Shown in pieces: positions 5,392 through 58,859 of a stretch of 64,000 bases of DNA. Location of the stretch: sequence record MW879340.1; one strand, written 5' to 3'. Under the pieces are notes generated by a model. That model saw nothing but the letters and a program-made list of their open reading frames with translations. It searched no databases and was not told the DNA's origin. A program made the position numbers and the translations under genes. Position 1 is the stretch's first letter. Each line of letters starts with the position of its first letter.

Positions 5392-5417
5392 GTGGGGGCT
5401 GCTTCGGCGGCTCCCGC
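5392..5417 (+). terminator. Hairpin terminator candidate
   Basis: gtgggggctgc-ttcg-gcggctcccgc followed by ttatgcc. Confidence 0.6.
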
Positions 5418-5442
5418 TTATGCCAATTAACCGGAGACCCGT

Positions 5443-5847
5443 ATGTTAGACAAGCTGGTTACAAAAGAGGATTACGAGGCAGCCTTCTGGTCACTGGAAG
5501 GTGGGCATGAGTACGGTAACCGCTGGATAGAAACAGCAGACCCTACCATCATGGATATCGAAGGACGGTTCTGTCAGGAGGAACTGGAAGCGTTCATTAC
5601 CATAATTAGCTACGATGCTAAACATCCACGTCAACCGCTAATCGACAGAATGCGGGTGGTTAGTGATGTGGAGTATCAACAGGCGGTCGCTCACATTGCG
5701 GCGGGTGATAATGGCAAACAACGTTTGACATTTACACCGCATCCGCATCTCATCGATGTAGACGGCCCATGTTCGATAGCCGACCTCACAGCGTTAATCA
5801 CAATCCTTGACTATAATTGTCAGCGCGCGGGGAAACCTTATGTCTGA
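5443..5847 (+). CDS. Hypothetical protein with two copies of a ~60-aa domain
   Basis: GGAG RBS; internal duplication (DIEGRFCQEELEAFITIISY / DVDGPCSIADLTALITILDY). Confidence 0.7.
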   Translation: MLDKLVTKEDYEAAFWSLEGGHEYGNRWIETADPTIMDIEGRFCQEELEAFITIISYDAKHPRQPLIDRMRVVSDVEYQQAVAHIAAGDNGKQRLTFTPHPHLIDVDGPCSIADLTALITILDYNCQRAGKPYV

Positions 5848-6028
5848 TAAACTCATCACTGAAGAAGAGAAGCGAGCGGCCGAAGATCTGATTCTTAACG
5901 ATCCAGAATACACCAACTACTTTGATGAAGATTGGGATTCAACCCATATTCTACTCGATGGTAAGTTCACCATTGAGCAGTTGGAAGCGGCTATCTTATT
6001 GAAACGTTACACTCAACAAGGAAAGTAA
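5840..6028 (+). CDS. Hypothetical protein, single copy of the same ~60-aa domain
   Basis: Start reassigned to ATG 5840 (MSDKLITEEE); LLDGKFTIEQLEAAILLKRY matches the preceding gene's repeats. Confidence 0.65.
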   Translation: MSDKLITEEEKRAAEDLILNDPEYTNYFDEDWDSTHILLDGKFTIEQLEAAILLKRYTQQGK

Positions 6029-6030
6029 CA

Positions 6031-6354
6031 ATGAGAGATGCTAACTTCGCTGCTAATTCACAGCTGCTGCGTGAGATGCTGTACGAGGTCACCACAGACG
6101 CTAATCTAACCGCACAGCAGCATCGCGACCATGCGTATGTACTGCGTGAGGTTAAACGTCGCTTAAACGAGCGCTACGGCGTTGCTGTGACATTATTCAA
6201 CCTTATCCCGCGTGATGGTACATATCTCAGCGTAGAGGCGCTGAATGAGTTTGGTGTATCCGCACGCATTATTGCCACCCACTTTGCAAACACCGCATGG
6301 ATGGCTAAACGTAAACACTTTGCCTTGTGGCAACCGGATCTTAAATCGGCATAA
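6031..6354 (+). CDS. Hypothetical protein
   Basis: 107-aa ORF, AAGGA RBS, coupled to the previous gene. Confidence 0.65.
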   Translation: MRDANFAANSQLLREMLYEVTTDANLTAQQHRDHAYVLREVKRRLNERYGVAVTLFNLIPRDGTYLSVEALNEFGVSARIIATHFANTAWMAKRKHFALWQPDLKSA

Positions 6355-6420
6355 AAGACGAGCGCCTTCTACCCCGCAGTGGGGTAGAAGGTCGCCGTCT
6401 CACTTATGCTTTTTTTTTGC
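6347..6420. terminator. Bidirectional terminator between convergent genes
   Basis: ccttctacccc-gcagt-ggggtagaagg 11-bp stem, T-tract at 6410-6418, flanked by cggcataa and ttatgc. Confidence 0.75.
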
Positions 6421-9400
6421 TTACACTTTGCCGAAATCTAAGTCGTCGTCAGAACCCTTTTCAGATTCTTTCTTCTTCTTAGCTTCCTTCTTCTGTGTAC
6501 GCTTGGACTTACGGTCACGACCGGTTGGCTTGTCTGCATCTTCTTCTTTGAAGTTGAGCTCGCCATCGTCCTGCTGCTGTTCTTCGAATTCTTCTTCAAC
6601 ACCATCGCTGGTAGGCTCAACGAAGTCGTCTGCTTCTGCACCGTCTACAGGTGGCTCCACAAACGCATCCGCTTCAGCGCCATCGACAGGCTGCTCTACG
6701 AACTCTTCAGGTGTTTCTTCACCTTCAACAGGCGGTACGTCTTCTTCAGAAGCTTCCGGTTGGATAGGGTTACCATCCGCGTCGAACTCTTCTTCCGGTG
6801 GAGTGTCTTCGTTGTTACCGTCGCCTTCCGGATTCGGTTCTTCAAAGTCATTCCCAGCACCGTCTCCCGGTTGTTCCTCGAACTCGCCATCTGCACCATC
6901 GACCGGAGTTTCTTGGAAATCATTACCCGCACCATCGGCAGGTTGTTCCTCGAATTCAGCAGGTGGTACTGGATTACCGTTCTCGTCCAATTCAGGTTCA
7001 GGTTCAACCGATCCTTCCTCGGCTACAATCGGATTACCTTCATCATCCAGCTCTGGCTCAACCGCTTCGATTGGGTTACCGTCTGCATCAAACTCTTCAG
7101 CCGGCTCTACTGGCTCAATCGGGTTACCTTCAGCGTCAAGTTCAGGTTCCACTGGTTCAGCAGATTCAATTGGATTGCCCTCGGCGTCCAACTCTGGTTC
7201 GGTCACGTCGGCCATCGGTTCGATTGGTTCGCCATTAGCATCAAGCTCTGGTGTTGCTTCTGCTGACATCAGTGACGCCGCTTCAGCTGATCCATCGCCC
7301 TCTGCACCTGCCTCGCTTCCGCCCTCAGAGAACTCCCCACCTTCGGAGAACTCACCAGCGCCTTCCACATTACCCTCACCAGTAAAGTCATCGCCACCAG
7401 TACCATCACCGTTAGCATCAAACTCACCGCCAGCACCATTATCAATGACGTTGCCATTTTCATCATACTGGATTTCACCACCGTCGTCACCTCCACCGAA
7501 ACCGTTGGCAGCTGGATCGTTCTCCAGATTGCCTTGCTCTTCCAGCTTATCAAAGGACTTCTTCAACTTGCCTTTCATTTTGTTAGAGAGCTTCAGGTAT
7601 TCGATCAAGCCGTTAGTGGCCTGTTCGTTGTATGCAACCATGGACGCCAGTAACGTGAACGATGCATTAGAATCATCACCCACTTCACACAGCTCAGTAA
7701 TGTCAGCATAGCTACCACTGCCCGCCATCCATTCACGCATTTTGTGCGCAACGAGGTTCTGACGCCACATCTCGAACTTACCGGTATCAGCACCGTCACC
7801 CAGCATATAAGACAGAATGTCGTCAGTGTAGAGATCCTTGATGGTGTTCTCGTAACGCTGACGCATGGTGTCGTATGCACGGTTCTGTTCGTCGATGTCT
7901 CCTTCCATCGGTTCTGGCAGGGACAACTCAATGGAGTTGATGAAGTTCACCAGGATAAAGTTAGCCAACGACTGATCGTTGTTCTCAATCTCTGGATGCT
8001 CTTCCTTCAGCTCTGCAAGCTGTTCTTTCCCTTTCTTAGAGGAAGGTGCCCACAGCTTCTTGTTATCCTGAATGGTCTGGTACAGATCGTTCATCAGGTT
8101 ACCGGACTTGGCAACGATCTTCTGTACGAGTTCAGACAGGAACGCGCAAAGCATGTGACGCTGCATACCCGTGGATTTACGGAACAGGGCGTTGTTGTTG
8201 ATGTGCTCGATCGCAAACTGAGTTGCGTTCTGCGTAGACAGCAGTGCAGGGTCAACGCCCCACATGTTCCACAGCATCTCCAATAACCGGTCGTTCCAGT
8301 CGGCATCCGGTGGTGTGATGTTACGTTTGTCGTAAGACACGTCCACGTCGATGTCAGGATAGCCTGGGTGACCACTGGTCTTAATTTGAACAGATGCTTC
8401 GTCCATGATGTTAATGACGTCACGTGGGTTACGTGCACCAATCAACGAGGACATCGTGCGGTTGCTGTTCAGGTGTGTGGTCACAATCGCTTCAACGGTG
8501 GCATCCGGTTCCGGGTTATCCGGATCCAGCTGGATACCCAGCGTGGTGATGTTAGTAGAAGAAGAGATGTTTGCCATGGTGGTAGCAATTACGTTTGCCA
8601 TCGCCATCGACGCATACAGCTTCGAACGCTCAAGCAGTGAACGGCCAATACCAAAGCGGTTATAATCAAACGCCATGTATACCAGAGACTCTTCTGGCAG
8701 GAAGAGGATCTTGGTTTTCAGGTTACGCAGTGTACGGGCAACCATCATGGATTTGATCTCGTCGGTCATACCCAGCGCCACTTTCTGCGCAAAGGTACCG
8801 TTGACGATACGCTGTACCAGATCGCGTTCAATCTCTTCGTTAACCTTACGGCGGAACTCGGTCATAGAGAAGTTATCAGAAGAACCGTTGCGGTATTCCT
8901 GAGCCATCTCGATAATGCCTTTCGTACCATCAATGGCACTGGCAGTATCCGACTTGTTCTGCATGTTGTCCTGGTAGGCGTTCTCGGACATGGCCGTAGA
9001 CAGCGGGTTACCGTCACCGTCCAACAGCACGTATGCACCGATACGGGCTTTCGGGTTACCTGGCAGGTGAACCGGGATAACCGCTTCAGGAGGCAGATCC
9101 ACCCACAGCACCGCATCCACGTTCTGTTTAGTCAGCTCATCATCACGACGAACTTCTACCAGATCGGTTGGTGCGTAGTCACGGGTTTTAAACAGCTGGT
9201 TATAAATGCCAACGTACTGTTCCTGTGACAGCTGTTTAGAGATGGATGTGTTGCCGCGGTTGTCACCTTTGTCTTTTGGCTTACCGTTCTCATCCAGGGC
9301 TTCGATACCGTAACTGCGGTGCTGACCTTTCAGACCACGCGGTACACGCACCTTGGTTGCCATGGCGTTACGGGCCAGGGTTAGCTTCAGCTGCGGGAGG

Positions 9401-10134
9401 CGCAGAATGGCATCGTTGTCGGTTACTTCGAAACCAAAGTTTTCCGTACCCACGTTGGTGCTGGTCATTGTCGGGACAGTACCGCTGATCAGTGATTCCA
9501 GAGAAGCACGTTGGCCGCTGTTCTTCTGAATAATGAAATCATTATCACCCAGCCAGCCACGGTTAATGAAGTTACCGTCTTTGTATTCGTCTTCCAATGC
9601 TTCCATAGAAGCACGGACGTGACCGTTAATGATATTGTCAAGCGCAGAACTGGACAGCAATGCAATCGGGCGAGAACCTTTGTAAAAAAGGATGTCTGCC
9701 AGCATGTCCTGTAAACGGTCCGTAATTTTATAGTTGTTTTCTACGTAATCCTTTACCGTATTCAACAACATATTGTTCAGGTCGTTGTTACGACCTTCAT
9801 ACGTTTCTGATGTATACGACAGGTTAATACTGGTTAAATCGCGAGGAGACAGAATGGCTGCCTGTAGAATGCTGAGTGCTTTAAAGGCTCCCGGCACCGA
9901 CTCCATGAGCTCATGGTTCGCGTCAATGGTGGTACTGGTGATCTTTGAGATACGATCCAGTGTCGCTTTAGAGATCTGATCCTTGTTAGCGTTACTGCCA
10001 CCTGTTTTAGTTTTTTCTTTGTTGTCTTCAGGTGTCAACATACCCAGGATCGATTGTGATACCGGATCCTTATTCAGCATATTCAGCTTGGGCGTCTTTA
10101 CACCGGACACCCCAGTTAATCTTTGACCAGCCAT
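6421..10134 (-). CDS. Probable portal protein (phiKZ gp129 / SPN3US gp81-like) with long acidic repeat C-terminal tail
   Basis: 1237 aa; AGGAG RBS; divergent from the virion gene block, as recalled for phiKZ-like portals; FDYNRFGIGRSLLE and IQLDPDNPEP segments; ~350-aa Glu/Asp/Pro/Gly tail. Identity inferred from size, synteny and recall. Confidence 0.6.
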   Translation of the reverse strand: MAGQRLTGVSGVKTPKLNMLNKDPVSQSILGMLTPEDNKEKTKTGGSNANKDQISKATLDRISKITSTTIDANHELMESVPGAFKALSILQAAILSPRDLTSINLSYTSETYEGRNNDLNNMLLNTVKDYVENNYKITDRLQDMLADILFYKGSRPIALLSSSALDNIINGHVRASMEALEDEYKDGNFINRGWLGDNDFIIQKNSGQRASLESLISGTVPTMTSTNVGTENFGFEVTDNDAILRLPQLKLTLARNAMATKVRVPRGLKGQHRSYGIEALDENGKPKDKGDNRGNTSISKQLSQEQYVGIYNQLFKTRDYAPTDLVEVRRDDELTKQNVDAVLWVDLPPEAVIPVHLPGNPKARIGAYVLLDGDGNPLSTAMSENAYQDNMQNKSDTASAIDGTKGIIEMAQEYRNGSSDNFSMTEFRRKVNEEIERDLVQRIVNGTFAQKVALGMTDEIKSMMVARTLRNLKTKILFLPEESLVYMAFDYNRFGIGRSLLERSKLYASMAMANVIATTMANISSSTNITTLGIQLDPDNPEPDATVEAIVTTHLNSNRTMSSLIGARNPRDVINIMDEASVQIKTSGHPGYPDIDVDVSYDKRNITPPDADWNDRLLEMLWNMWGVDPALLSTQNATQFAIEHINNNALFRKSTGMQRHMLCAFLSELVQKIVAKSGNLMNDLYQTIQDNKKLWAPSSKKGKEQLAELKEEHPEIENNDQSLANFILVNFINSIELSLPEPMEGDIDEQNRAYDTMRQRYENTIKDLYTDDILSYMLGDGADTGKFEMWRQNLVAHKMREWMAGSGSYADITELCEVGDDSNASFTLLASMVAYNEQATNGLIEYLKLSNKMKGKLKKSFDKLEEQGNLENDPAANGFGGGDDGGEIQYDENGNVIDNGAGGEFDANGDGTGGDDFTGEGNVEGAGEFSEGGEFSEGGSEAGAEGDGSAEAASLMSAEATPELDANGEPIEPMADVTEPELDAEGNPIESAEPVEPELDAEGNPIEPVEPAEEFDADGNPIEAVEPELDDEGNPIVAEEGSVEPEPELDENGNPVPPAEFEEQPADGAGNDFQETPVDGADGEFEEQPGDGAGNDFEEPNPEGDGNNEDTPPEEEFDADGNPIQPEASEEDVPPVEGEETPEEFVEQPVDGAEADAFVEPPVDGAEADDFVEPTSDGVEEEFEEQQQDDGELNFKEEDADKPTGRDRKSKRTQKKEAKKKKESEKGSDDDLDFGKV

Positions 10135-10165
10135 TTATAAGGCTCCTTGTATTCGGGAGATTCCC

Positions 10166-13559: not shown

Positions 13560-13561
13560 TC

Positions 13562-16797: not shown

Positions 16798-17201
16798 CTA
16801 CCATGAAAGATGGTGGTGGTGATCCAGTTGTTGAAGCGGACGATCGTGTCCTTGATGCATTACAGAACTCTCCGCATGGTCTTGTGTCGAAAGCCATGGT
16901 GATCTGTGGGGTGACGTCTGTGATTACCGTGAATGCCTGTGCCTTGATCTTCTTTGGCATGTGTGTGGTTCACGTGGTGATTAACAGCTCCTGGCCACCT
17001 AACGTGGGCTGGGGGATTACGTCTGTAATGTTGATTGGTCCGGTCTTAACCGCATGGCAGTTCATGGGTGTGCGTAAGATCCTTACGTCTATCTTCTCTG
17101 AAAATAACTCACTTGGGTCTATCATCAAAGAAGTGGTTTCCCGTCGAATGGGTATGTCTCCACCTGCCCCGCCAAAGCCTCCTGAAGATCCACCGGCATA
17201 A
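16794..17201 (+). CDS. Two-TMD membrane protein, holin candidate
   Basis: Two hydrophobic segments; charged/Pro-rich tail; GGAG RBS fits ATG 16794, which overlaps the ruvC stop; in-frame Mets also at 16782 and 16803. Confidence 0.45.
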   Translation: MTTMKDGGGDPVVEADDRVLDALQNSPHGLVSKAMVICGVTSVITVNACALIFFGMCVVHVVINSSWPPNVGWGITSVMLIGPVLTAWQFMGVRKILTSIFSENNSLGSIIKEVVSRRMGMSPPAPPKPPEDPPA

Positions 17202-17246
17202 AGAAAGACCCCTGGGCCGCTCACGCAGTCCAGGGGTCTTATGCCG
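17194..17246. terminator. Bidirectional terminator between convergent genes
   Basis: aagacccctgg...ccaggggtctt stem bracketed by CGGCATAA and TTATGCCG. Confidence 0.7.
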
Positions 17247-28057: not shown

Positions 28058-28111
28058 CGGCATAAGCAAGGCCTGGCCCTTCCCTTACGGGAGAGGCCAG
28101 TGCCTTTATGC
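28058..28111. terminator. Bidirectional terminator between convergent genes
   Basis: ctggcc-cttccc-ttac-gggaga-ggccag stem bracketed by CGGCATAA and TTATGC. Confidence 0.65.
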
Positions 28112-28114
28112 TGA

Positions 28115-29390: not shown

Positions 29391-31877
29391 ATGCGCATTA
29401 AGTATATTGAACTATACAATTACCAGCGCTTAAAGAACAAAGGGATTAACCGCATCAAGCTGGACTTCACTGAAGTGATTCAAGTCATCATCGGAAAGAA
29501 CGGTGGTGGTAAGTCGTCGTTGATGCGTGAGCTGTCTCCTTTACCGCCGGACAACGGGGATTACATCAAGGGTGGCACCAAATACGTTCTGCTGGAGCAC
29601 AAAGGTCAGCATTATGAACTGATGTCCATCTGTGGCTCTCCATCACGCCATTCCTTTAAGTGTAACGATGTTGAGCTCAATGATTCCAAAAACCTCAGCG
29701 CTCAGAAAGAACTGGTGGAAGTGCACTTTGGTTATACCGGGGAAATCCATGAGTTACTGATGGGGTTGGTTAACGGCGTGGCCTTTACCACCATGTCACC
29801 GGCCAAGCGCAAAGAATGGCTGATGACGCTGTACCCGAATGACTTAACGTACATCACCAATCTGCACGATAAGTTTAAAACCATGCTGCGAGATGCTAAG
29901 GGCGGTATTCGTACCAGCTCGACGCATCTGTCTGGGCTTTATGACCAGCGTGGCGGCGGCAACATCGATGAGATGCAGCAACGCATTGATCAGTTGCAAT
30001 TACGTCGTGACAAGGTCGCTCGCTTGATTTCTGAGCAAGTGTCGAACGAGAACCATCAGGCCAACATCGACCGCACCTACGTCGATCTACAGCGTTTGGT
30101 GAACAGCCACCGTAATCCGATTGCTTTATCCGGCGAATACCGTAACCGTAGCCACATCGTGGATTTGATTAACGAAGCCAACGGTAACTTACAACAGTTG
30201 GACTACGCACATCAGACGCATCGTAAAGAGCTGAACGAGCTTGCCAACAATGAAGTCTTTAAACAAGCAGCCAGTGCTGATGATAAAGAACGTCTGGAAA
30301 AGCAGCAGCGTGAACTGACCGAGCAGTTTGAGCGGGACCGCACCGATTGGGACATTGCGGTATCAAACTACAGTGAGTTACCGGTTTGGCCTGTCATTAC
30401 GGCGTTGAACGAGTTCGACCAGCGTAACCTGATCAGTGTATCCAGTGATCTGCTGCAATCGTTGCTGGCACTTGCGCCGATGGATGATCGTGAAGTTACA
30501 CTGCGTCGTTATGATGCCGTGGTGAAGTTGAAGTATGACCTGGGTCCGGAGATTGACAAGCAAACGGATATCGTTAACCGTATCGTGCACAAGCTGGCTC
30601 ATTTGGAGTCTGCTGACCGTACGGAATGCCCGGCGTGCTCGCATCGTTGGCTGCCAGGTATTTCACCTCAACAGCTGGACGACTTCAGACAGCGCCGTAT
30701 CACCGAACAGCAAACGTTAGATGACCTCACCGCACGCATGAAGAAGTGCGACGACTATATCAACACGTACAGCGTCTGGTATGCTGCTGCCGTACAGTTC
30801 ACCCGCTTCACAGTTGGTCACCAGAATCTGGAATCACTCCACACCTGGCTGACTGAGCAGGAAGTGCTGTATGTAGGTGGTGGTGATTATGCCAGTCAGA
30901 TTATGGCGATCGTTAACGCACTGCCGACTGAACATCGTCTGCATAGCACCAAGGCGGAACTGGAACAGATTGCGGGTCGTCTGAAGATGTTTGATTCCGA
31001 TGCGCTGGAATGGCACAAACGTCGTTATCAGGAACACGAAGACGCGCTGAACAAAGTCATTGAACAGCAGCGTGGTGTGAAACTTGATCTGGCCAAGTTG
31101 AACAGTGACTTGCAAATGGTTGACGATGCTGAGCGCATGGTGAATGAACTGCAACGTCAGCGTGGGTATATCGTTACACAGGTTGGTGAATACGCTAAGC
31201 AAACCTTAACTGGGATTGCTAATGCTGAACACCGTCAACTGGGTGAAGAACAACGCACACTGAATGCGCAGCTGTTTAACAGTCGCTCGCTGGAAGGCAC
31301 CATCATCAGTACTGAGCAACATATTGAGTTAATGAAACAGCAGGAGGAAGTGCTCAAGCTGTTAGTTAAAGCTTCGTCCCCAACCGAAGGCGTGATTGCC
31401 GAACAGTTGTCAGAGTTCATCGAATGCTTCATGGGTAACATGAATGCTGAGATCGATGAGATTTGGGACGATGTGTTGCAGATCAAACCGTGCACCATGG
31501 AGAACGGGACGCTGTCGTATAAGTTCCCATTGTTGTCCGGTGAGTACGATTGTGAAACCGTTGACATTGCCGAATCTTCTACCGGGGAATCGCAGGTGAT
31601 CAACTGGGTATTCCGTTTGGTCGTAATGGAGTACCTGGGCTTCAACGAGTATCCATTGTACGGCGATGAGATTGGCGCCAACTTCGATGAGAAACATCGG
31701 CCGAAGCTGATGGAGTTCTTGAAGAAGTGTGCATCGTCCGGTAAGTACAGTCAGATCTTCTTAATATCGCACTACATCGCCCAGCACGGCGTTTTAACGC
31801 ATGCTGAGGTCTGTGCTCTGTCTACGGATGGTGTGGCGCTCCCTGAGCGTTACAACGAGCATGTGGTGATTTCCTAA
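29391..31877 (+). CDS. sbcC: SbcC/Rad50-like SMC ATPase
   Basis: Walker A GKNGGGKSS, coiled coils, zinc hook CPAC, signature SSTGES, Walker B YGDE, H-loop ISHY. Confidence 0.9.
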   Translation: MRIKYIELYNYQRLKNKGINRIKLDFTEVIQVIIGKNGGGKSSLMRELSPLPPDNGDYIKGGTKYVLLEHKGQHYELMSICGSPSRHSFKCNDVELNDSKNLSAQKELVEVHFGYTGEIHELLMGLVNGVAFTTMSPAKRKEWLMTLYPNDLTYITNLHDKFKTMLRDAKGGIRTSSTHLSGLYDQRGGGNIDEMQQRIDQLQLRRDKVARLISEQVSNENHQANIDRTYVDLQRLVNSHRNPIALSGEYRNRSHIVDLINEANGNLQQLDYAHQTHRKELNELANNEVFKQAASADDKERLEKQQRELTEQFERDRTDWDIAVSNYSELPVWPVITALNEFDQRNLISVSSDLLQSLLALAPMDDREVTLRRYDAVVKLKYDLGPEIDKQTDIVNRIVHKLAHLESADRTECPACSHRWLPGISPQQLDDFRQRRITEQQTLDDLTARMKKCDDYINTYSVWYAAAVQFTRFTVGHQNLESLHTWLTEQEVLYVGGGDYASQIMAIVNALPTEHRLHSTKAELEQIAGRLKMFDSDALEWHKRRYQEHEDALNKVIEQQRGVKLDLAKLNSDLQMVDDAERMVNELQRQRGYIVTQVGEYAKQTLTGIANAEHRQLGEEQRTLNAQLFNSRSLEGTIISTEQHIELMKQQEEVLKLLVKASSPTEGVIAEQLSEFIECFMGNMNAEIDEIWDDVLQIKPCTMENGTLSYKFPLLSGEYDCETVDIAESSTGESQVINWVFRLVVMEYLGFNEYPLYGDEIGANFDEKHRPKLMEFLKKCASSGKYSQIFLISHYIAQHGVLTHAEVCALSTDGVALPERYNEHVVIS

Positions 31878-36919: not shown

Positions 36920-36948
36920 GGCGAGGCTTCGGCCTCGCCCTTATGCCG
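36920..36948 (+). terminator. Hairpin terminator candidate
   Basis: ggcgaggc-ttcg-gcctcgcc followed by cttatgccg. Confidence 0.6.
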
Positions 36949-36965
36949 ATCTAAGGATAACTCGT

Positions 36966-38766: not shown

Positions 38767-38770
38767 CACG

Positions 38771-38803
38771 AAGGCCGGGTAACACCGGCTTTCTTTTTTT
38801 TTT
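38771..38803 (+). terminator. Rho-independent terminator
   Basis: aggccgg-gtaaca-ccggctt then a long T run. Confidence 0.8.
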
Positions 38804-38817
38804 GTCGCGGAGGGATT

Positions 38818-41883: not shown

Positions 41884-41893
41884 ATCATAATTG

Positions 41894-41934
41894 GATCGGT
41901 CTCCTGCTTCGGCGGGAGATTGATCTTTTTATGC
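41894..41934 (+). terminator. Rho-independent terminator
   Basis: gatcggtctcctgc-ttcg-gcgggagattgatc then ttttt-atgc. Confidence 0.75.
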
Positions 41935-41951
41935 TGCATTATTTTTCACAT

Positions 41952-41960
41952 CTACATTAC
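41952..41960 (+). promoter_or_regulatory. Early promoter motif CTACATTAC
   Basis: Just downstream of the terminator; followed by tccagtga. Confidence 0.65.
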
Positions 41961-44839: not shown

Positions 44840-44868
44840 TTAAAATAAGAAAGTAGTGCGCTAAACAA

Positions 44869-44892
44869 GGGAGGGCTTCGGCCCTCTCTTTA
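44869..44892 (+). terminator. Hairpin terminator
   Basis: gggagggc-ttcg-gccctctc followed by tttt. Confidence 0.7.
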
Positions 44893-44933
44893 TAACCAAA
44901 TACCAAATTTAACTTGTTGGAGTAATAAAGATC

Positions 44934-47416: not shown

Positions 47417-47427
47417 GCGGCATAACG

Positions 47428-47460
47428 GTAGGGGCTTCGGCCCCTACTGCTTTCTTTTTT
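47428..47460 (+). terminator. Rho-independent terminator
   Basis: gtaggggc-ttcg-gcccctac then a T-rich tract. Confidence 0.8.
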
Positions 47461-50556: not shown

Positions 50557-50561
50557 CCTAT

Positions 50562-50592
50562 GGCTGGGGGAAACCCCAGCCCTTTTATGCCG
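50562..50592 (+). terminator. Hairpin terminator
   Basis: ggctgggg-gaaa-ccccagcc then ctttt-atgccg. Confidence 0.75.
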
Positions 50593-50609
50593 CTTTAAAG
50601 GAAACTCGT

Positions 50610-51242: not shown

Positions 51243-51655
51243 TGGGACAAGCAATTGCGTTTCTAATCAAAGATGCCGACGAACCAGAAATGGCGGGTGT
51301 CTTAATTCAGACCGAACGTGAAATGGATTTCGACGACATTAAGCGTGATGTTGAACGCATCGTTAATTATGAAGATCTACAGGACAAGTTCTACATGCGT
51401 ATGGCTGACGACGAAACCACCTTCAGCTTTGTCGTGGTGGAAGGCGTGTCAATGCCGGTATTCATTTTCCACAACGTGTCACGTCGTAACTGGTCTCAGG
51501 CTGCCGCGGACGTTATCGCTAAAAACGCTGTCGGCTATTCCGTTGTGTTGTTCACACCAGAAGCCTTAGCGATCACTGTAAAGAACACCATTGGGCTTAT
51601 GGGGCTCGATGATGTCTGTGGTCCACTGCGCGGCATTCCTTACAAAGAAATGTAA
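51242..51655 (+). CDS. Hypothetical protein
   Basis: TAATG coupling. Confidence 0.65.
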   Translation: MGQAIAFLIKDADEPEMAGVLIQTEREMDFDDIKRDVERIVNYEDLQDKFYMRMADDETTFSFVVVEGVSMPVFIFHNVSRRNWSQAAADVIAKNAVGYSVVLFTPEALAITVKNTIGLMGLDDVCGPLRGIPYKEM

Positions 51656-51733
51656 AGGTTAACATAACTACACGAATGATTTGAATGGCAGTTGTGCCAT
51701 GTACCTTGTTCCATTTTCCAGTAAGGATACAAA

Positions 51734-52396
51734 ATGAAACATGTTTTAGTAGCGGACTTAGAAACTGGTAGTAAAGAGAAAGATGCCGCGGTGTTTGCCA
51801 TTGCAGCTGTTCTTTTTAATATCGAAGATCCCGCTTCTGTTGAAAGAATCAAACAGGCTTTTGCCGCTGGTGAAAGTCTTGACGATTATCTTTATACTAA
51901 ACTACACGTTGGTGATCAGTGGATGGATGGCCGTCGATTAGATGATGACACGCAGGGCTGGTGGCGTCAGGATCGACTCCGTATCCCACGCGAAGCACAG
52001 AAGGGTGGCGTTGGTGATTTCCGCGTTGCTCTGAAGGCTTTCGTTAAGTTGGTCAACGAACTGGTTAAACGTCACCAGGAAGAGTACGGCACTGATAGTA
52101 AAATCGTCGTGTACTTCCGTGATCGTCAGTTCGATGACAACATTCTCCAACATGCCGGGGAAATGTATAACGTTAAATTCCCTTATCAATTCAACCAGCG
52201 CCGCGACATAAGGACGTATATCGACACCAAACTCAACACCACGATCGGGTACATCCCGGACTTTAAACCGTTCCCTGATCTGCCACGTCATCACGCCATG
52301 ACAGACGTGCTACATGACGCCGCTTCTATGTGTGAAGCGAACCGCCGTTCTTTATTAACCACACGCAGTGCATTATCTGATGACACGTCACCGTAA
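51734..52396 (+). CDS. DEDD 3'-5' exonuclease (RNase AS / ExoVIII-like)
   Basis: LVADLETG, WWRQ, FDDNIL, RRDIRT and HHAMTD motifs. Confidence 0.8.
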   Translation: MKHVLVADLETGSKEKDAAVFAIAAVLFNIEDPASVERIKQAFAAGESLDDYLYTKLHVGDQWMDGRRLDDDTQGWWRQDRLRIPREAQKGGVGDFRVALKAFVKLVNELVKRHQEEYGTDSKIVVYFRDRQFDDNILQHAGEMYNVKFPYQFNQRRDIRTYIDTKLNTTIGYIPDFKPFPDLPRHHAMTDVLHDAASMCEANRRSLLTTRSALSDDTSP

Positions 52397-52572
52397 CAGG
52401 TGGCGACCTTTATGCCTTTCAGACCCGTCATCTGATATGGCATTTTTGTAGTTGTACGGCGCGTGTGTACGGAACAGCAGGACAGTCAAGACAACGGACC
52501 AGTCGATGGCGAACACTTAATCAGCTTAGCCACTGATTAGGTACAAGTAACTTTTGATTCTGGAGGATCATC

Positions 52573-53019
52573 ATGACTACCCTTAACGTTGCGAACTACT
52601 GGGCTGAAGTGAACAACCACGCTGTTGCTAATGCGTTTATCAGCAGCGATGTTAACCAGGTATTCCACCCATTCACCTTGCAGGTTATTTTACACGGGTT
52701 GAATATTAACGACATCAAACAACCAGGCGTTACGTACACGGGACGTTGTCTGGAATTACCCAACATTAATACCCACCTGTCTCCGATCAAGACTTTCATC
52801 TGTCGCTTTGATTTCCAGGGCACCAGAATGATCAATTCGCTGATCGTGAGTATCAAGATGGATCTTGGCACCAACCAGGTATCTGCTGTACCGTTACTGG
52901 GTTGGGATGTTTACGGTCGATCTATTGCGGAAGCATTGGATCTTCGTCAGGGGATGGAGATTTACGATTCGTACGGTAACATCAAAGCATGTGCTGACTG
53001 GCTGATGACAGCGGCATAA
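52573..53019 (+). CDS. Hypothetical protein
   Basis: GGAGG RBS; 148 aa. Confidence 0.7.
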   Translation: MTTLNVANYWAEVNNHAVANAFISSDVNQVFHPFTLQVILHGLNINDIKQPGVTYTGRCLELPNINTHLSPIKTFICRFDFQGTRMINSLIVSIKMDLGTNQVSAVPLLGWDVYGRSIAEALDLRQGMEIYDSYGNIKACADWLMTAA

Positions 53020-53024
53020 AGACC

Positions 53025-53072
53025 AGGTGGCGCTTGTGACGTTGTCACAGCGCCGTACCTATTTACTTTTTT
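53025..53072 (+). terminator. Hairpin terminator
   Basis: ggcgc-t-tgtgac-gtt-gtcaca-gcgcc stem followed by a T-rich run. Confidence 0.6.
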
Positions 53073-53074
53073 AA

Positions 53075-53527
53075 ATGGGAATCACACTAATGCTTAAGAT
53101 CTTCAACGAGTGTTTAAATGCGATCAACAAGTGCATTAAAGGTTTGCTCGAAGATGGTTTGTTAAGTGTAAATCAGGATTTCGGACAGACTATCGAACCC
53201 TGGCAACGTAAAGCGCTGAATGGGATCGTGGGGGATCACGAGGTAACCGATATCACCGGTTGTCATCTTCCACAGATCGACATTCACGGCATGCCCACTG
53301 ACGCGATGGTAGTCGGTTTCCAATACAAAAAGGATAACCGTCTATGCTGGGCGTCTGCATTAGTGGTTTCGAATGCGGCAACCCAATGGTCTAACGTCTC
53401 GGTACTGACTGCGGAAGAAGCGCAGGCTGGTCTGGACGAAGACAAGCAAGTGGTTGGCCTGAAGTACCCGTCCATTGGCCAAGTTGGTCAGATGGCGGCG
53501 GAAGCTTTACCTGCGCAAGCAGCATAA
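53075..53527 (+). CDS. Hypothetical protein
   Basis: 150 aa; start may be Met6. Confidence 0.65.
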   Translation: MGITLMLKIFNECLNAINKCIKGLLEDGLLSVNQDFGQTIEPWQRKALNGIVGDHEVTDITGCHLPQIDIHGMPTDAMVVGFQYKKDNRLCWASALVVSNAATQWSNVSVLTAEEAQAGLDEDKQVVGLKYPSIGQVGQMAAEALPAQAA

Positions 53528-53580
53528 TTAAAAAGACTACAAACAAGAATTCGTTTACTTTACTCAAAGGAAATTCGCCA

Positions 53581-54732
53581 ATGGACAGTTATCTCGTTTT
53601 AGGCCACCATATCCTGCGTGATGGTCGTCGACGTGGTGATCGTACTGGTACCGGAACCAAAAGCATCCGCAGCGCCAAACTGGTGTTCGACATGCAGAAA
53701 GGTTTCCCCCTACCCACGACCAAAGTTGTTCACCTGGAAAAGGTGTTCCGTGAACTGAAGTGGATTCTGATGGGCGAGTCAAACATGGCTTACCTGGAAG
53801 AACACGGCTGTGGCTTCATCTGGCGGAATTGGTCGTTAAGCGAGCCGGTAACACAAATGGTTCGTTATGCCGATTGGCGCCGTCTTAAGGTGTTGAAGGA
53901 TGACTACCCTGAGGCGTACGCGATCTGGCAATCAGAAGGGTATGAAAAGCGTTCGATTAAAGAAGGCCACGCCTTCATGGATAAGTATGAGGTTCCTACT
54001 CACTGGGAGAAAGTCTTAATCCCTGCGGGTGAAACCAATGCACCATATGGTCCAGCTTGGCGTAAGTGGCAAGGGCGTAATGGCGAAGAGATTGACCAGA
54101 TTCAATATCTGCTTGATACTCTGCGCACCAATCCGTTTAGCCGCCGTATTCTGTTATCTGCATGGGATCCCGCTAACCTGCCGGACGAGACCATCTCACC
54201 ACAGGAGAACATTAAAAACGGTAAGCCGTGTCTGACACCTTGCCACTGGGCTATTGAAATGTACACCGACGAAATGACGGTTGATGAACGTATCAACTGG
54301 TTGGTGGAACGCAACCCAATGGCCTGGGACAAATGGGTAGATGCGGGCAACTTAAAGCAGGATGAACTGTTGGATAAGTTCCTTGACGATCGTGGTGTGC
54401 CAAAGCATTTCCTCGATTTGAAATGGCACCAACGTTCAGTGGACTTCTGTGTTGGGCTTCCTTACAACATCGCCAGTTACGGTATGCTGTTGATGATGTT
54501 TGCCACCACGTTGAACATGGTTCCTCGTGAGCTGGAACTCGACGGCACCAACGTCCACATTTATAACAATCATGTTGAAGGCTTCGCCCAGCAATTCAGT
54601 CGTGCACCGCGTGAGCTGCCACGTCTTGAAGTGGTCAACAAGCGTGAACGACTGGAAGATTACGAGTGGGAGGACTTTGTCCTTAGCGGTTACAACCCGC
54701 ACCCATTTATTAAATACGACGTTTCCATCTAA
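53581..54732 (+). CDS. thyA: Thymidylate synthase with two insertions
   Basis: DRTGTGT, TTKVV, PYGPAW, RRILLSAW, catalytic PCH, QRSVD, PYNIASY (Asn, so dUMP-specific), HIYNNH. Confidence 0.95.
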   Translation: MDSYLVLGHHILRDGRRRGDRTGTGTKSIRSAKLVFDMQKGFPLPTTKVVHLEKVFRELKWILMGESNMAYLEEHGCGFIWRNWSLSEPVTQMVRYADWRRLKVLKDDYPEAYAIWQSEGYEKRSIKEGHAFMDKYEVPTHWEKVLIPAGETNAPYGPAWRKWQGRNGEEIDQIQYLLDTLRTNPFSRRILLSAWDPANLPDETISPQENIKNGKPCLTPCHWAIEMYTDEMTVDERINWLVERNPMAWDKWVDAGNLKQDELLDKFLDDRGVPKHFLDLKWHQRSVDFCVGLPYNIASYGMLLMMFATTLNMVPRELELDGTNVHIYNNHVEGFAQQFSRAPRELPRLEVVNKRERLEDYEWEDFVLSGYNPHPFIKYDVSI

Positions 54733-54741
54733 GTACCTGTA

Positions 54742-54770
54742 AAGGGGGCTTCGGCCCCCTTCTTCCTTTT
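54742..54770 (+). terminator. Rho-independent terminator
   Basis: aagggggc-ttcg-gccccctt plus pyrimidine/T tract. Confidence 0.75.
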
Positions 54771-54798
54771 ATGACGTTTAAAGACTCAAGGAACCCGT

Positions 54799-55428
54799 AT
54801 GTCAGAACCAAACGTATTAAAGCAGTCGACTTTCCCACTGAATAACAACCTGGTAGCTATTGAGGCTGATGGGGTTGGTAAATATCCGTTCGTGTTTCTG
54901 CTGGAAGAAGCAACCACCGAGAAACTGCTTAAACTTAATGACAACTTGAAAGCACTTGGTAAGGACCCCATTGATACCAATAAAACGATCAATGAGGCGT
55001 TGGCAAGCGCGCTGGACGGATTGTTATCACGTAACAAACATCCGCATGACCTACCGGACTATTTTGTGCCTAAACATTTCTTCCATCCTGAAGTGGGTGA
55101 CTGGTGGAACGAACGCTGTTGCGGTTACGGTACAGTGCATGAAGTATTCAGTGATGATGACTTCGTCTTTGACCTCACGGCTAATCTGGCTGGGTTGGAG
55201 CCGGGTCTTTATCGTATTAATCGCCAGTGGCTGGCTCGCTTTGTGGCATACGACTGGAAAGCATTGTTGGCTAAGCCAGAAGGCCAGCATACCGCCAGCG
55301 AATTCTGTGCTGACCCAATGCGCGGTTCTACTCGTCGGCCAGAAACAGAGGCCAAGCGCGCAGCGTGGTATGCGTTGAATAAAGAAGATGTGAAAGATAT
55401 CCGTCAGTTCGCACCAGCTGATAAATAA
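54799..55428 (+). CDS. Hypothetical protein
   Basis: AAGGA RBS; 209 aa. Confidence 0.7.
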   Translation: MSEPNVLKQSTFPLNNNLVAIEADGVGKYPFVFLLEEATTEKLLKLNDNLKALGKDPIDTNKTINEALASALDGLLSRNKHPHDLPDYFVPKHFFHPEVGDWWNERCCGYGTVHEVFSDDDFVFDLTANLAGLEPGLYRINRQWLARFVAYDWKALLAKPEGQHTASEFCADPMRGSTRRPETEAKRAAWYALNKEDVKDIRQFAPADK

Positions 55429-55456
55429 AACAAAATGCTATAGGTAGTGGTTGTAG

Positions 55457-55490
55457 GAGTGGGGGGTTTCGCCCCACTCTTTTATTTTTT
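55457..55490 (+). terminator. Rho-independent terminator
   Basis: gagtgggg...ccccactc then a T tract. Confidence 0.75.
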
Positions 55491-55522
55491 ATTATTGATA
55501 CACACATCGGGTTACTGCCATT

Positions 55523-55840
55523 ATGGTACCGAATAACGTTTATAGTGACACCTTGTCACTTATCCAGTTTCTTGAATCGCATGCCGAGGTCCCTTGTTCC
55601 GCTTTACGCATCACCGACAAGGCTAATCGGCGACATCTACCTTACGACGCCCAGGAGGCTATTCTGGAGTTGCAGTACCTGCTCAATGAGTATTTTAATG
55701 AGAGCGCCAAAGTGGAAGCCTTATTAAAATACTGCGCCGAGCATCTATGTATCTTGACCTGTACCCAGGGAACGGAAGACACCTGGGGCCTCACGACTTT
55801 CTTCCTCAATCTGACCAAAGGTAAGATCTGGTTTGGTTAA
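55523..55840 (+). CDS. Hypothetical protein
   Basis: 105-aa ORF; weak RBS. Confidence 0.5.
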   Translation: MVPNNVYSDTLSLIQFLESHAEVPCSALRITDKANRRHLPYDAQEAILELQYLLNEYFNESAKVEALLKYCAEHLCILTCTQGTEDTWGLTTFFLNLTKGKIWFG

Positions 55841-55849
55841 TGTTGACAG

Positions 55850-56530
55850 ATGAATGATATGTCTTTGTTACCTGAGGGATGTCTCGTGAGTCGATCAATG
55901 ACCTGGTCTAAACTGGAGATGGTTTGGCTATTGGTTGCGTCCTTGGTGTTATCGGCCACAGCGTGCTTCTACGCGAACTGGTTCTACTACGTAGCGACCA
56001 TGTCGTTTGTGCTGCACTTCATTCTTCTATCTCGCGGCTGTGTCATGGGGTTCTTTTTTGGCGGCGTCATGGTCGCCTTCTACGGATTCTATTGCTACCG
56101 TGTGGGAATGGCCTTTCACTTAGGGGCGCAAGGGCTGTACATGTTAGTCAATATCGTAGGTGCTGTTATCTGGCAGTATCAATTTGCTTTTCGTAAGCCA
56201 CAGCTAATGCAAGAACTTCCGCGTTGGCATGACGCGCTACTGACAGCCGTGCTGATCTTTGGTACGGGTGTCGTGGCGCATAACCTTATCGCCTCCGGCG
56301 ACACAGAAGAGTCCTTACGACCGTTTACCATTATTGGTGCGAGCATAGGGACGATCATGGTCATCTTTGAATTCCGTGAACGGTGGTGGGTATGGATGCA
56401 GGTGTGCAGCATTGCTGTCGTCCTGTGGGCCATGCACTACATACAAACCGGCTACGGTATCCCAGGGGTAGTCGCCTGGTTGGTTGCTTTGTTTAGCGTT
56501 GTTATTTGTCACTACACGCATCGAAAGTAA
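55850..56530 (+). CDS. PnuC-like nicotinamide riboside/vitamin transporter
   Basis: About 7 TMDs; GFFFGGVMVAFYGFYCY, QGLYMLVNIVGAVIW and RERWWVWM blocks match the PnuC layout. Confidence 0.7.
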   Translation: MNDMSLLPEGCLVSRSMTWSKLEMVWLLVASLVLSATACFYANWFYYVATMSFVLHFILLSRGCVMGFFFGGVMVAFYGFYCYRVGMAFHLGAQGLYMLVNIVGAVIWQYQFAFRKPQLMQELPRWHDALLTAVLIFGTGVVAHNLIASGDTEESLRPFTIIGASIGTIMVIFEFRERWWVWMQVCSIAVVLWAMHYIQTGYGIPGVVAWLVALFSVVICHYTHRK

Positions 56531-56542
56531 TATCACGGTGGC

Positions 56543-56587
56543 GATCTTCTCCTGCTTCGGCGGGAGAGGATCCCGCCTTTTATGCCG
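56543..56587 (+). terminator. Hairpin terminator
   Basis: tctcctgc-ttcg-gcgggaga (identical to 41900-41919) followed by tttt-atgccg. Confidence 0.7.
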
Positions 56588-56604
56588 TCCAAATACTTTC
56601 ACAC

Positions 56605-56613
56605 CTATATTAC
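56605..56613 (+). promoter_or_regulatory. Early promoter motif CTATATTAC
   Basis: After the terminator; followed by ctaagtga. Confidence 0.65.
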
Positions 56614-56653
56614 CTAAGTGATCGTGATCCCTAAACTTGTATGAGTATTTATC

Positions 56654-56953
56654 ATGACTATGTCTGAAGACAAAGAAGAACGTCTGGCGGCTATAGACCG
56701 CATGAAGATAAAAATGGCTGGGTTACAAACCGAAGCAAAGAACTGCTGGGATGAAGTCACCCGCGGTCAACACAGCATCTCTATTCAGCACGGCCACCCC
56801 AATCAGCTGAAGAAAATACAGGATCTTCAGGCGGTTATTGTCAAAGCCACGCAAGCAGACAATGAGGCTAAAGAGATCCAACGCTTTATCGACCGTGCCG
56901 TACAAACGTACGTGCGGGATTATCCACAGTTCGGAAGAGGAATCTTAAGATGA
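56654..56953 (+). CDS. Small coiled-coil protein
   Basis: 99 aa, helical. Confidence 0.65.
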   Translation: MTMSEDKEERLAAIDRMKIKMAGLQTEAKNCWDEVTRGQHSISIQHGHPNQLKKIQDLQAVIVKATQADNEAKEIQRFIDRAVQTYVRDYPQFGRGILR

Positions 56954-57363
56954 CACCACCGTTAGTGCTTTACCGTTGTGGTTGGCAGGCCGCTCAGAAC
57001 CCGGTGTATTACGCCATACATCACCCTCCTTCTCCAGGACTGCTGTCGTACTGGTTGACTGGTCAGGGCGATTCCTACGACACCTACGTTGGTATTGTGG
57101 CGTGCCCTGCGGGCAGTGACCCAATGGAAGTGGTTCGTCGTGATTTCCTCAATGTTGTTGATCGTAACATGACGACCCGCTACACCTATGGTGACGCAAT
57201 GAGTGATCGCTTCCCAATGGCGACGCTCGACTGGGCTGATCAACGACTGGCATACTTTGCAGCCACGGGGCAGATCTGGGATAAACCGATAGTCGGTCAT
57301 TATCAGATTGCGCCTGACGACACCTGGTGGTGCACAACCAACGTCGAGTTCTTCGACCTGTAA
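56950..57363 (+). CDS. Hypothetical protein
   Basis: ATGA overlap; GAGGA RBS. Confidence 0.65.
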   Translation: MTPPLVLYRCGWQAAQNPVYYAIHHPPSPGLLSYWLTGQGDSYDTYVGIVACPAGSDPMEVVRRDFLNVVDRNMTTRYTYGDAMSDRFPMATLDWADQRLAYFAATGQIWDKPIVGHYQIAPDDTWWCTTNVEFFDL

Positions 57364-57368
57364 TCTAC

Positions 57369-57399
57369 AAGGGCCATTTCGGTGGTCCTTTTATTTTTT
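57369..57399 (+). terminator. Rho-independent terminator
   Basis: aagggcca-tttcgg-tggtcctt plus a T tract. Confidence 0.7.
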
Positions 57400-57429
57400 G
57401 TTTCTTTTACGATGCAGATAATCTCAGAC

Positions 57430-57438
57430 CTATATTAG
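57430..57438 (+). promoter_or_regulatory. Early promoter motif variant CTATATTAG
   Basis: After the terminator; followed by catagtga. Confidence 0.55.
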
Positions 57439-57496
57439 CATAGTGAATAAGAGCAATGAACTTTGCCCTTTAACCCTTAACCGTTGGAGATTCACC

Positions 57497-57730
57497 ATGA
57501 ACACTACTCAAGTTTGCGTTGCCGGTATCGTTGCTGTTGTTGCCCTGGGTGTTGTTGCTGATATTAAAGCACGTTTCAAAAAGAAACCTGTTCCTCAGCC
57601 TAAACCTAACCTGACCGATGCACAAGTACACGAACTGGTAATGGGTCGTATCCGTAAAACTCATGCACCAGAAATGCACGAAGCCTTTGACATCATTGGT
57701 AAAGTATGCGGTAATTCAATCTATCGCTAA
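57497..57730 (+). CDS. Small N-terminally membrane-anchored protein
   Basis: Start moved to ATG 57497 after GGAG; VCVAGIVAVVALGVV followed by a KKK stop-transfer. Confidence 0.7.
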   Translation: MNTTQVCVAGIVAVVALGVVADIKARFKKKPVPQPKPNLTDAQVHELVMGRIRKTHAPEMHEAFDIIGKVCGNSIYR

Positions 57731-57739
57731 GGGGCTACC

Positions 57740-58021
57740 ATGCTTACAACTCAACAGTACAATGAACGTCGTATGATGATTGCTAACCTGGAAGCGGAGT
57801 TATCCAAACACTGCGAACGCACCCAAGCTGCTGCTCGTTTTGCTTGTAAACTTCAGAAGCAAGCAAACAGACAAAAGCCAGGTAGCGCCGAACATAAACT
57901 GTACGCATGGTTAGCATCTGAGGCTAACTGGGACAGTGAGTTGATGTACGACGAAACCGGCGATCTGGTCAGGCGCAATGAATACGCCAAAGACAAGTTA
58001 AAACAAGACATTAAGTCTTAA
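57740..58021 (+). CDS. Small helical protein
   Basis: AAGGGG RBS; 93 aa. Confidence 0.65.
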   Translation: MLTTQQYNERRMMIANLEAELSKHCERTQAAARFACKLQKQANRQKPGSAEHKLYAWLASEANWDSELMYDETGDLVRRNEYAKDKLKQDIKS

Positions 58022-58027
58022 CTCATC

Positions 58028-58055
58028 AGGAGGAACTTCGGTTCCTTCTTTTTTT
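58028..58055 (+). terminator. Rho-independent terminator
   Basis: aggaggaac-ttcg-gttccttct plus a T tract. Confidence 0.8.
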
Positions 58056-58087
58056 GTTTATTTAACGAGTCGCATTTAATTTCAAAT

Positions 58088-58096
58088 CTACATTAC
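58088..58096 (+). promoter_or_regulatory. Early promoter motif CTACATTAC
   Basis: After the terminator; upstream of 58150. Confidence 0.65.
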
Positions 58097-58149
58097 TAAG
58101 GCGATAAGCCGTATAAACTTTCTATCCATAACTCGTAAGGAAATATATC

Positions 58150-58539
58150 ATGGTCAATGACATTTCTATTCACGACCCGCTCCCTCCAGAACTGCGTATG
58201 GAGGCCGAGTACCTCGTATCGCAGATCATCTGCCCGATCACAAACGCCATAGAGATGTATACAGCGCGTTTTGATGGCGTGTTGGAGTCGTTGGCTATGT
58301 TGCTCATCTGTGAGCGTCACGCTGCCGTAGACGCGTTCCTGCACGTTTGTGATGAGCATGCGCTGTCCGGTGCTGCGGCGTACTTAATCCTGGATAAGAC
58401 TCGCCCCCGTAAAGAGTTCCTGTCCAACTGGGAGCGCTGTAACGAAAAGTGGCATCGCTTGTACGTGCAAAACATTCGTGCATGCCAAACTCTCGCAGAG
58501 ATGTTGGAAGTATCGCGCGCCCAAGGTCGGATACTGTAG
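58150..58539 (+). CDS. Hypothetical helical protein
   Basis: AAGGA RBS; 129 aa. Confidence 0.7.
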   Translation: MVNDISIHDPLPPELRMEAEYLVSQIICPITNAIEMYTARFDGVLESLAMLLICERHAAVDAFLHVCDEHALSGAAAYLILDKTRPRKEFLSNWERCNEKWHRLYVQNIRACQTLAEMLEVSRAQGRIL

Positions 58540-58547
58540 GAGGTAAC

Positions 58548-58796
58548 ATGTCTGAAGAAAAACGTACTGCACAAGGGGTGAGCGTCAAGTTCCCGACTGA
58601 ACCTAAAAACGACATGTTGTCGTACGATGAGTTCATTCAGTTGTTTGACCTGTCTGGGGATAAAAGCAAGTCAGTGTTCATTCATAACGCCATTCGTCAT
58701 TATGCTAGCGTTGTTCGTGATCGTATTGACCAGGAACAGCAAGACCTGGCTGAGCGCAGTAAAAAGATAAGCGAACTGTTTCCACCTAAACCTTAA
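58548..58796 (+). CDS. Possible ribbon-helix-helix DNA-binding protein
   Basis: Start moved to ATG 58548 after AGGAGG; GVSVKFP...KSKSVFIHNAIRHY then a coiled coil. Confidence 0.5.
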   Translation: MSEEKRTAQGVSVKFPTEPKNDMLSYDEFIQLFDLSGDKSKSVFIHNAIRHYASVVRDRIDQEQQDLAERSKKISELFPPKP

Positions 58797-58859
58797 CCCG
58801 TCTGTATGGTATAAGACAAACCTGCACTTATGCCGTTTCGATCTAATAAGAGAGATAAA

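Follow-up and report, generated by a model that had tools for sequence, protein, structure and literature searches.

Hairpins with a TTATGCYG tail as probable intrinsic terminators of Erwinia jumbo phage pEa_SNUABM_48

The phage and its genes

The stretch of DNA analyzed here (64,000 nt, "the window") is identical to bases 1–64000 of the Erwinia jumbo phage pEa_SNUABM_48 (MW879340.1, 294,405 bp), and the sister isolate pEa_SNUABM_37 is likewise identical across the tested stretch. The element under study is a short motif, TTATGCYG, which follows hairpins between genes and is called the tail below. The large genes of the window encode virion proteins, a polymerase and an SbcC-like protein (29391–31877). 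In the record, all coding sequences (CDSs; 356/356) carry the label "hypothetical protein", despite clear profile matches, which include four RNA polymerase (RNAP) beta/beta' pieces, a terminase, a DNA polymerase and a helicase.

The profile search identified a nuclear shell protein (phrog_4795) at 202983–205016 and a phiKZ-type major head protein. Split RNAP beta/beta' genes are located at 205113–206585 and 224288–228377, with PF00562 and PF00623 hits and matches to the PHROG RNAP beta-subunit families. From its gene content, pEa_SNUABM_48 appears to be a nucleus-forming, phiKZ-like jumbo phage, and phiKZ-style transcription is expected because of the shell protein and the split RNAP genes. 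Its next relative is the Salmonella phage vB_SalM_SA002 (SA002), with ~76% DNA identity. For the genome-wide counts, the whole record was reassembled from six annotated stretches. Gene context was taken from a greedy set of open reading frames (347, for 356 annotated CDSs), in which a few starts are mis-set (50418 for 50610).

The tail, its hairpins and their conservation

TTATGCYG is present 19 times in the window, compared with 3.59 ± 1.71 copies in shuffled sequences, none of which (0/100) reached 19. The 6-mer TTATGC alone is weakly enriched (39 versus 28). The genome contains 77 copies of the 8-mer, and 56 of them have a hairpin with a free energy (ΔG) of −14 kcal/mol or lower in the 45 nt directly upstream. 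The baselines of this test are 8.3% for random positions, 10.6% for random intergenic positions and 0–12% for scrambled 8-mers. A first-pass annotation of the window had proposed such a genome-wide comparison, and the hairpin association that it described is borne out, with 56/77 copies against 8–11% at random. The remaining 21 copies, mostly intragenic, are about the number expected by chance. In an unbiased count of the 6-mers found within 19 nt on the 3' side of every strong hairpin, TTATGC ranks top, with 48 observed and 1.0 expected. The signal is the 8-mer adjoining a hairpin, not bare TTATGC.

The sites named by the first-pass annotation were found in place, both those with TTATGC 3' of hairpins on the plus strand (5418, 6404, 17239, 28106, 36941, 41929, 50585, 52410 and 56580) and those with its reverse complement (6347, 17194, 28058, 47418 and 53012). 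As it had stated, the motif is found on both strands at all three convergent junctions of the window (Table 1), the copies at 28058 and 47418 lie outside annotated CDSs, and the copy at 58828 has no hairpin (ΔG −4.4). Its wording of the motif, TTATGC(C/T)G, suits most of the listed copies; those at 5418 (TTATGCCA), 6404 (TTATGCTT) and 52410 (TTATGCCT) match the 6-mer only.

After the TTAT anchor, the tail continues with G (77%), C (72%), C (72%) and G (73%), and then with A, T and T at 45–64%. The full consensus is a GC-rich stem-loop followed by (Y)TTATGCCGAT(T). When the motif is relaxed to TTATKYYG, 119 genomic copies are found, 73 of them after hairpins, and degenerate tails such as TTATGACG, TTATGTCG, TTATACCG and TTATAACC also follow intergenic hairpins. 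Most tails consist of (Y)TTAT and GCCG, and an uninterrupted U-tract of about four or more is found in a minority (T10) only. In this minority class, the hairpin is directly followed by T10 and often then by G-Y-C-G (38768–38805; record positions 107496, 214942 and 239683).

The orientation of the tail follows a clear strand logic. Of the 56 copies linked to a hairpin, 51 come after the stop codon of a gene read in the same direction, mostly at a distance of 11–70 nt (binomial p = 1e-10). In intergenic regions between two plus-strand genes, the tail is on the plus side of 15 hairpins and on the minus side alone of only one. Eleven convergent junctions of the genome carry tails on both strands. 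Hairpins at convergent junctions have a median ΔG of −25.6 kcal/mol, versus −19.1 kcal/mol between tandem genes (p = 0.0003), a contrast in keeping with efficient termination in both directions at the former and with partial read-through within operons at the latter. Several convergent sites have the opposing gene's stop codon partly within the antisense tail (CGGCA-TAA), which explains an earlier remark on Ala-stop codons. The same tail ends different gene classes, namely operons that begin at early-promoter-like boxes, and structural genes, the latter including the major head gene at 294318 and a virion protein gene at 6347.

To follow conservation, 33 sites were aligned with their SA002 orthologs. 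Seven of the eight motif positions are 97–100% identical and the C/T position is 88% identical; the average for hairpin positions is ~80%, and the base just past the motif is at 52%. Of the stem pairs, 344 are unchanged, 32 are altered on both sides and 29 on one side yet still pair, and 28 are broken; ten stem positions are compensated at the 41929 site alone. Because the stems covary while the tail positions stay identical, selection acts on both the hairpin structure and the tail sequence, and it is purifying at the tail. The synteny of the sites extends to the Erwinia phage RAY, which is more distant.

The words that follow hairpins were then counted in eleven jumbo phages, ten Gram-negative ones and the Bacillus phage PBS1. 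A TTATG-type tail was found in 8/11. TTATGC is the top word in SA002 (50 observed/1.1 expected) and RAY (45/0.8), while phiKZ has TTATGT (25/1.3) and TTATGC (18/0.9). TTTATG ranks top in 201phi2-1 (30/1.0), Goslar (18/0.5) and RSL2 (19/0.7), TATGTT in OBP (27/0.9), and TTATTT in pTD1 (25/0.8) and phiEaH2 (31/0.6). PBS1 has T-rich words only. TTAT is thus general among the ten Gram-negative jumbo phages examined, and the G-Y-Y-G extension is present in a large subset, covering five host genera (Pseudomonas, Escherichia, Ralstonia, Erwinia and Salmonella). That phages of five host genera have the phiKZ-type tail in common shows that it tracks the phage lineage and its transcription machinery, not the host.

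Table 1. Candidate terminators and related copies of the tail in the window (ΔG in kcal/mol).
Position	Strand	Feature	Hairpin	Tail	ΔG	Context
5390–5425	+	terminator	5390–5419	TTATGCCA, 5418–5425	~−25	after CDS ending 5386
6347–6411	both	bidirectional terminator	6355–6401, shared	TTATGCCG, 6347–6354 (−); TTATGCTT, 6404–6411 (+)	−33 to −35	junction 6354/6421; minus tail overlaps stop codon of + gene; plus tail followed by T run
17194–17246	both	bidirectional terminator	17205–17240	17194–17201 (−); 17239–17246 (+)		junction 17201/17250; SA002 ortholog keeps both tails, with compensatory stem changes
28058–28113	both	bidirectional terminator	~28065–28112	28058–28065 (−); 28106–28113 (+)		junction 28056/28115
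36920–36948	+	terminator	36920–36939	TTATGCCG, 36941–36948		between tandem + genes; tail 18 nt upstream of start codon 36966; kept in SA002
41893–41936	+	terminator	41893–41926	TTATGCTG, 41929–41936		after CDS ending 41883; promoter-like TACATTAC box downstream at 41953
44867–44897	+	degenerate tail on intergenic hairpin		TTATAACC		
47418–47451	−	hairpin with tail	47424–47451	TTATGCCG, 47418–47425		between two + genes; T-rich tail on + side of hairpin
50562–50592	+	terminator	50562–50581	50585–50592		18 nt upstream of annotated start 50610
52387–52417	+	weaker terminator	52387–52404	TTATGCCT, 52410–52417	−14.5	after CDS ending 52396
53012–53061	−	hairpin with antisense tail	53024–53061	53012–53019		tandem + context; tail overlaps stop codon of + gene 52573–53019
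54739–54763		comparable degenerate tail	54739–54763	TTTTATGACG		
55455–55489		comparable degenerate tail	55455–55489			
56537–56587	+	terminator	56537–56577	56580–56587		after CDS ending 56530; promoter-like TATATTAC box downstream at 56606
57369–57398		comparable degenerate tail	57369–57398			
58828–58835	+	copy without hairpin		TTATGCCG, 58828–58835		25 nt upstream of start codon 58860
59639–59667		comparable degenerate tail	59639–59667			

At several convergent junctions, a T run of 9–13 nt is found 0–6 nt after the tail (6404–6420; record positions 154623, 192850, 252251 and 288697), and is read on the other strand as an A run between stop codon and hairpin. At record positions 172753–172766, two tails, one on each strand, overlap head-to-head (TTATGCCGGCATAA) and have a separate hairpin on either side, an arrangement kept in SA002, unlike the usual one, in which two tails flank one shared hairpin. 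At four sites (36943–36954 and 50587–50598; record positions 111165 and 294320), a frame of three codons (Met-Pro-Ile/Leu-stop) starts at the tail's ATG. As it has no ribosome-binding site upstream, it probably arises by chance from the AT-rich sequence that follows the tail.

A conserved promoter-like box, ATTTCA-n3-CC-TA(C/T)ATTAC-n2-A-n-GTG, has ~22 copies genome-wide, all on the plus strand and upstream of genes (29170, 34493, 41953, 56606, 57431 and 58089 in the window; for example 93892, 106698, 124504 and 202909 in the record). This TAYATTAC box often comes 24–57 nt behind a terminator tail. It probably represents the phage's early promoters, used by the virion RNAP, and we take it to resemble the early promoters of phiKZ. 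The tail was also considered as part of this downstream promoter and rejected as such, since the spacing varies over the 24–57 nt and most tails have no box. At record positions 245631–245702, a promoter-like TACATTAC box precedes a hairpin with TTATGCCG, and a gene starts 15 nt farther on. The layout resembles that of a terminator within a 5' leader, comparable to the attenuators or premature stops that were reported for phiKZ and 201phi2-1.

Termination and the alternatives

By analogy with the terminators mapped in phiKZ-like nucleus-forming jumbo phages, the hairpin with TTATGCYG is very probably the main factor-independent terminator of pEa_SNUABM_48. It adds a member to a known class of terminators, in a lineage for which this class had not been described before, and has a sharper tail (TTATGCCGAT). 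ONT-cappable-seq of phiKZ yielded 133 termination regions and 61 predicted intrinsic terminators, made of a stem-loop and a "TTAT region", YTTATKYYGT (PMC10914365). TTATGCYG fits the published TTATKYYG. Motif A of 201phi2-1 (n = 59) resembles the phiKZ terminator motif, and eight 201phi2-1 terminators of this type functioned in uninfected Pseudomonas chlororaphis, i.e., with the host RNAP (PMC11512511). The first-pass annotation had offered a "phage-RNAP-specific terminator tail" as one reading. The terminator tail is upheld by the match to the published motif and by the co-directional 3' ends of genes; the RNAP specificity is not, given the activity with the host enzyme. A full-text literature search for the 8-mer returned an unrelated primer only.

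That RNA would end at the tails, and on which base, is taken from published data on relatives. The eight termination-site coordinates printed in the 201phi2-1 paper (PMC11512511) were placed on the 201phi2-1 genome, and 8/8 correspond to the pyrimidine directly before the conserved G, in the context hairpin-TTTATG-N-[Y]-G. In pEa_SNUABM_48, the RNA should thus end in ...UUAUGCY, 7–8 nt after the stem, a distance that is normal for intrinsic termination, and the conserved G would be the next, unincorporated base. The full conservation of this G in SA002 suggests, with the reserve that the mapping method resolves ~2 nt, that the polymerase may read the signal on DNA, for example as a Y/G pause step.

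In the proposed mechanism, the nascent RNA would fold into a GC-rich stem-loop, and the next 7 nt, UUAUGCY, would substitute for the usual U-tract. The Y/G step may act as a pause point, letting the short UUAU tract suffice. At convergent pairs, one hairpin with a tail on both strands would block traffic from both sides, and the weaker hairpins between tandem genes would be leaky stops inside operons.

Several observations weigh against this interpretation. Five hairpin-linked copies are antisense-oriented in tandem gene contexts, and the copy at 58828 is conserved although it has no hairpin. The last three positions of the RNA–DNA hybrid (GCY) are strong pairs, unlike a canonical U-tract, and the physical mechanism would therefore fall outside textbook rules. 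The final T of the published motif (..YYGT) is not kept in pEa_SNUABM_48, where A is preferred, although the position is weakly conserved. At this position 9, A accounts for 45% and T for 23%, versus 53–64% T in phiKZ and 201phi2-1, which is a lineage-specific difference. The published ends obtained by ONT-cappable-seq are resolved to ~±2 nt, and termination is not separable there from processing or exonuclease trimming to the hairpin. In pEa_SNUABM_48, we infer termination by homology; a search for sequencing runs containing this phage returned four metagenomic DNA runs only, with small shares, and no RNA run.

The tail could also be linked to initiation. The phiKZ late promoter is TATG, with G as +1; the motif is necessary, and TATG alone is not sufficient (Yakunina 2015). 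The beta-like subunit of the phiKZ non-virion RNAP binds the non-template TATG, which is taken up single-stranded by a pocket that lies beneath the beta-lobe (de Martin Garrido 2026). This tetranucleotide is embedded in the tail in most lineages and in every copy of pEa_SNUABM_48, and the likeness to the core of the non-virion RNAP promoter appears to be a real sequence coincidence. The word TATG is absent from the phiKZ and 201phi2-1 terminator papers (PMC10914365, PMC11512511), where the coincidence is unmentioned. The tail might thus be a dual element, in which TATG is also a start site for the non-virion RNAP (G = +1), with stop and restart at one spot. In line with this, the tails at 36941, 50585 and 245680 precede a start codon by 15–18 nt, with a Shine-Dalgarno sequence in between. 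The 58828 copy, directly upstream of a gene, belongs to a 60-nt block kept in SA002 (84%) whose flanks do not align. This copy is no terminator but may mark a TATG-type start of transcription; a GTATAAG-type box common to it was sought, and no family was found. Against a dual element, 30 of the 56 copies with a hairpin are directed at the 3' end of a gene on the other strand, and only ~5 lie within 20 nt of a start codon. A hairpin is not needed at promoters (there is no GC hairpin ahead of the model late promoter P119L), which are placed upstream of genes, whereas tails follow genes, and the published RNA 3' end is 3 nt past the would-be +1 G. At many tandem sites, a separate promoter-like box is found at a variable distance downstream (24–57 nt), and TATG shows neither enrichment nor a preferred spacing upstream of start codons beyond the terminator copies. 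Given the tails facing opposing genes, the hairpin-less P119L, the separate variable box and the tail shared by both gene classes, restart is probably not the general function, and we regard the dual element as unlikely. The earlier suggestion of a terminate/re-initiate element or antisense promoter is therefore not supported as a general rule; a restart role may exist at the few copies 15–18 nt before a start codon (36941, 50585 and 245680) or at 58828.

Alternatively, the tail could be a cleavage or protein-binding site on the RNA, with the hairpin protecting the new 3' end, and the mapped ends would be processing products. 3' exonucleases also stall 7–8 nt past a stable hairpin, and the mapping methods used in the relatives do not separate termination from processing. 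Such an RNA-level tag is nevertheless very improbable, as the conserved G lies beyond the mapped RNA end and is 100% identical in SA002, which fits a signal read on DNA by the polymerase. Moreover, such terminators lowered downstream reporter expression in the uninfected host, with no phage factor present, and the motif is common to phages of five host genera with different RNases. We give almost no credence to the disfavored idea of a DNA-level repeat unrelated to transcription, either a dispersed palindrome resembling repetitive extragenic palindromes (REP) or miniature inverted-repeat transposable elements (MITE), or a protein-binding palindrome. The two tails at convergent junctions do form an extended inverted repeat around the hairpin, but hairpin sequences vary between copies and only the tail is common. 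In addition, the orientation follows the direction of the upstream gene, the stems evolve by compensatory change, and tandem sites have the tail on one side only.

Intrinsic termination remains the preferred explanation, and the point of interest is why a sequence-specific tail holding the late-promoter tetranucleotide is needed. Selection is stronger on the tail, with its G past the mapped RNA end, than on the sequence of the hairpin, which points to a sequence-specific termination step in these unusual polymerases. One speculative and rather doubtful answer is that the phage RNAP core recognizes the tail as DNA: the beta-lobe pocket would seize the tail's TATG as the RNAP elongates and keep the enzyme in place just when the hairpin forms. 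If true, termination would hinge on the core enzyme reading a promoter-like sequence instead of on the weakness of a U-rich hybrid, and recognition of promoter and terminator would be two uses of one protein–DNA contact. Such a capture would also explain the retention of TTATG-Y-Y-G across jumbo phages of many hosts.

Relation to known systems

The sites provide a transcription-unit map for a wholly unannotated 294-kb Erwinia phage, with ~60–70 predicted terminators and candidate early promoters alongside. They also indicate that the phiKZ terminator tail, with lineage-specific sharpening, is common to jumbo phages of Erwinia, Salmonella, Escherichia, Ralstonia and Pseudomonas. As compact, strong and bidirectional terminators, they would be useful parts for the engineering of phages and enterobacteria.

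The closest counterparts are the terminators of phiKZ (Putzeys et al. 2024, PMC10914365). In both phages, which have phiKZ-type multisubunit RNAPs, a GC-rich stem-loop is directly followed by a TTAT-K-Y-Y-G tail, mostly in intergenic 3' regions, and bidirectional versions are found at convergent genes. The tail of pEa_SNUABM_48 is sharper and GC-richer, TTATGCCG followed by A/T/T; the extended form TTATGCCGAT has 24 copies, 22 of them after hairpins, compared with one in phiKZ. The 3' arm of the stem is C-rich in pEa_SNUABM_48 and G-rich in phiKZ. The phiKZ ends were mapped on transcripts, whereas those of pEa_SNUABM_48 are predicted from DNA.

Motif A and the A/B combinations of 201phi2-1 (PMC11512511) have the same hairpin and TTTATG-N-Y-G design, and in both phages the stem is extended, where sites are strong or bidirectional, by a complement of the tail on its upstream side. 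The host is a different one, the RNAP beta subunits are 28% identical, and position 9 favors T in 201phi2-1 and A in pEa_SNUABM_48.

Multisubunit RNAPs reportedly share an elemental pause consensus, G-10 Y-1 G+1, ascribed to work of Larson and of Vvedenskaya in 2014. The tail is similar in having a pyrimidine at its predicted RNA end and a conserved G as the base templated next. It differs in that G at −10 is not conserved in the pEa_SNUABM_48 lineage, with its C-rich 3' arm, and a pause is only predicted here.

Canonical intrinsic terminators likewise have a hairpin and an RNA end 7–9 nt after the stem, and the minority class with T10, for example after the hairpin 38768–38795, is of this kind. 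In the main class of pEa_SNUABM_48, the U-tract is cut to UU(U)AU, followed by the conserved G-C-Y and a conserved downstream G. Compared with the canonical terminator, the tail is sequence-specific, not merely a weak hybrid.

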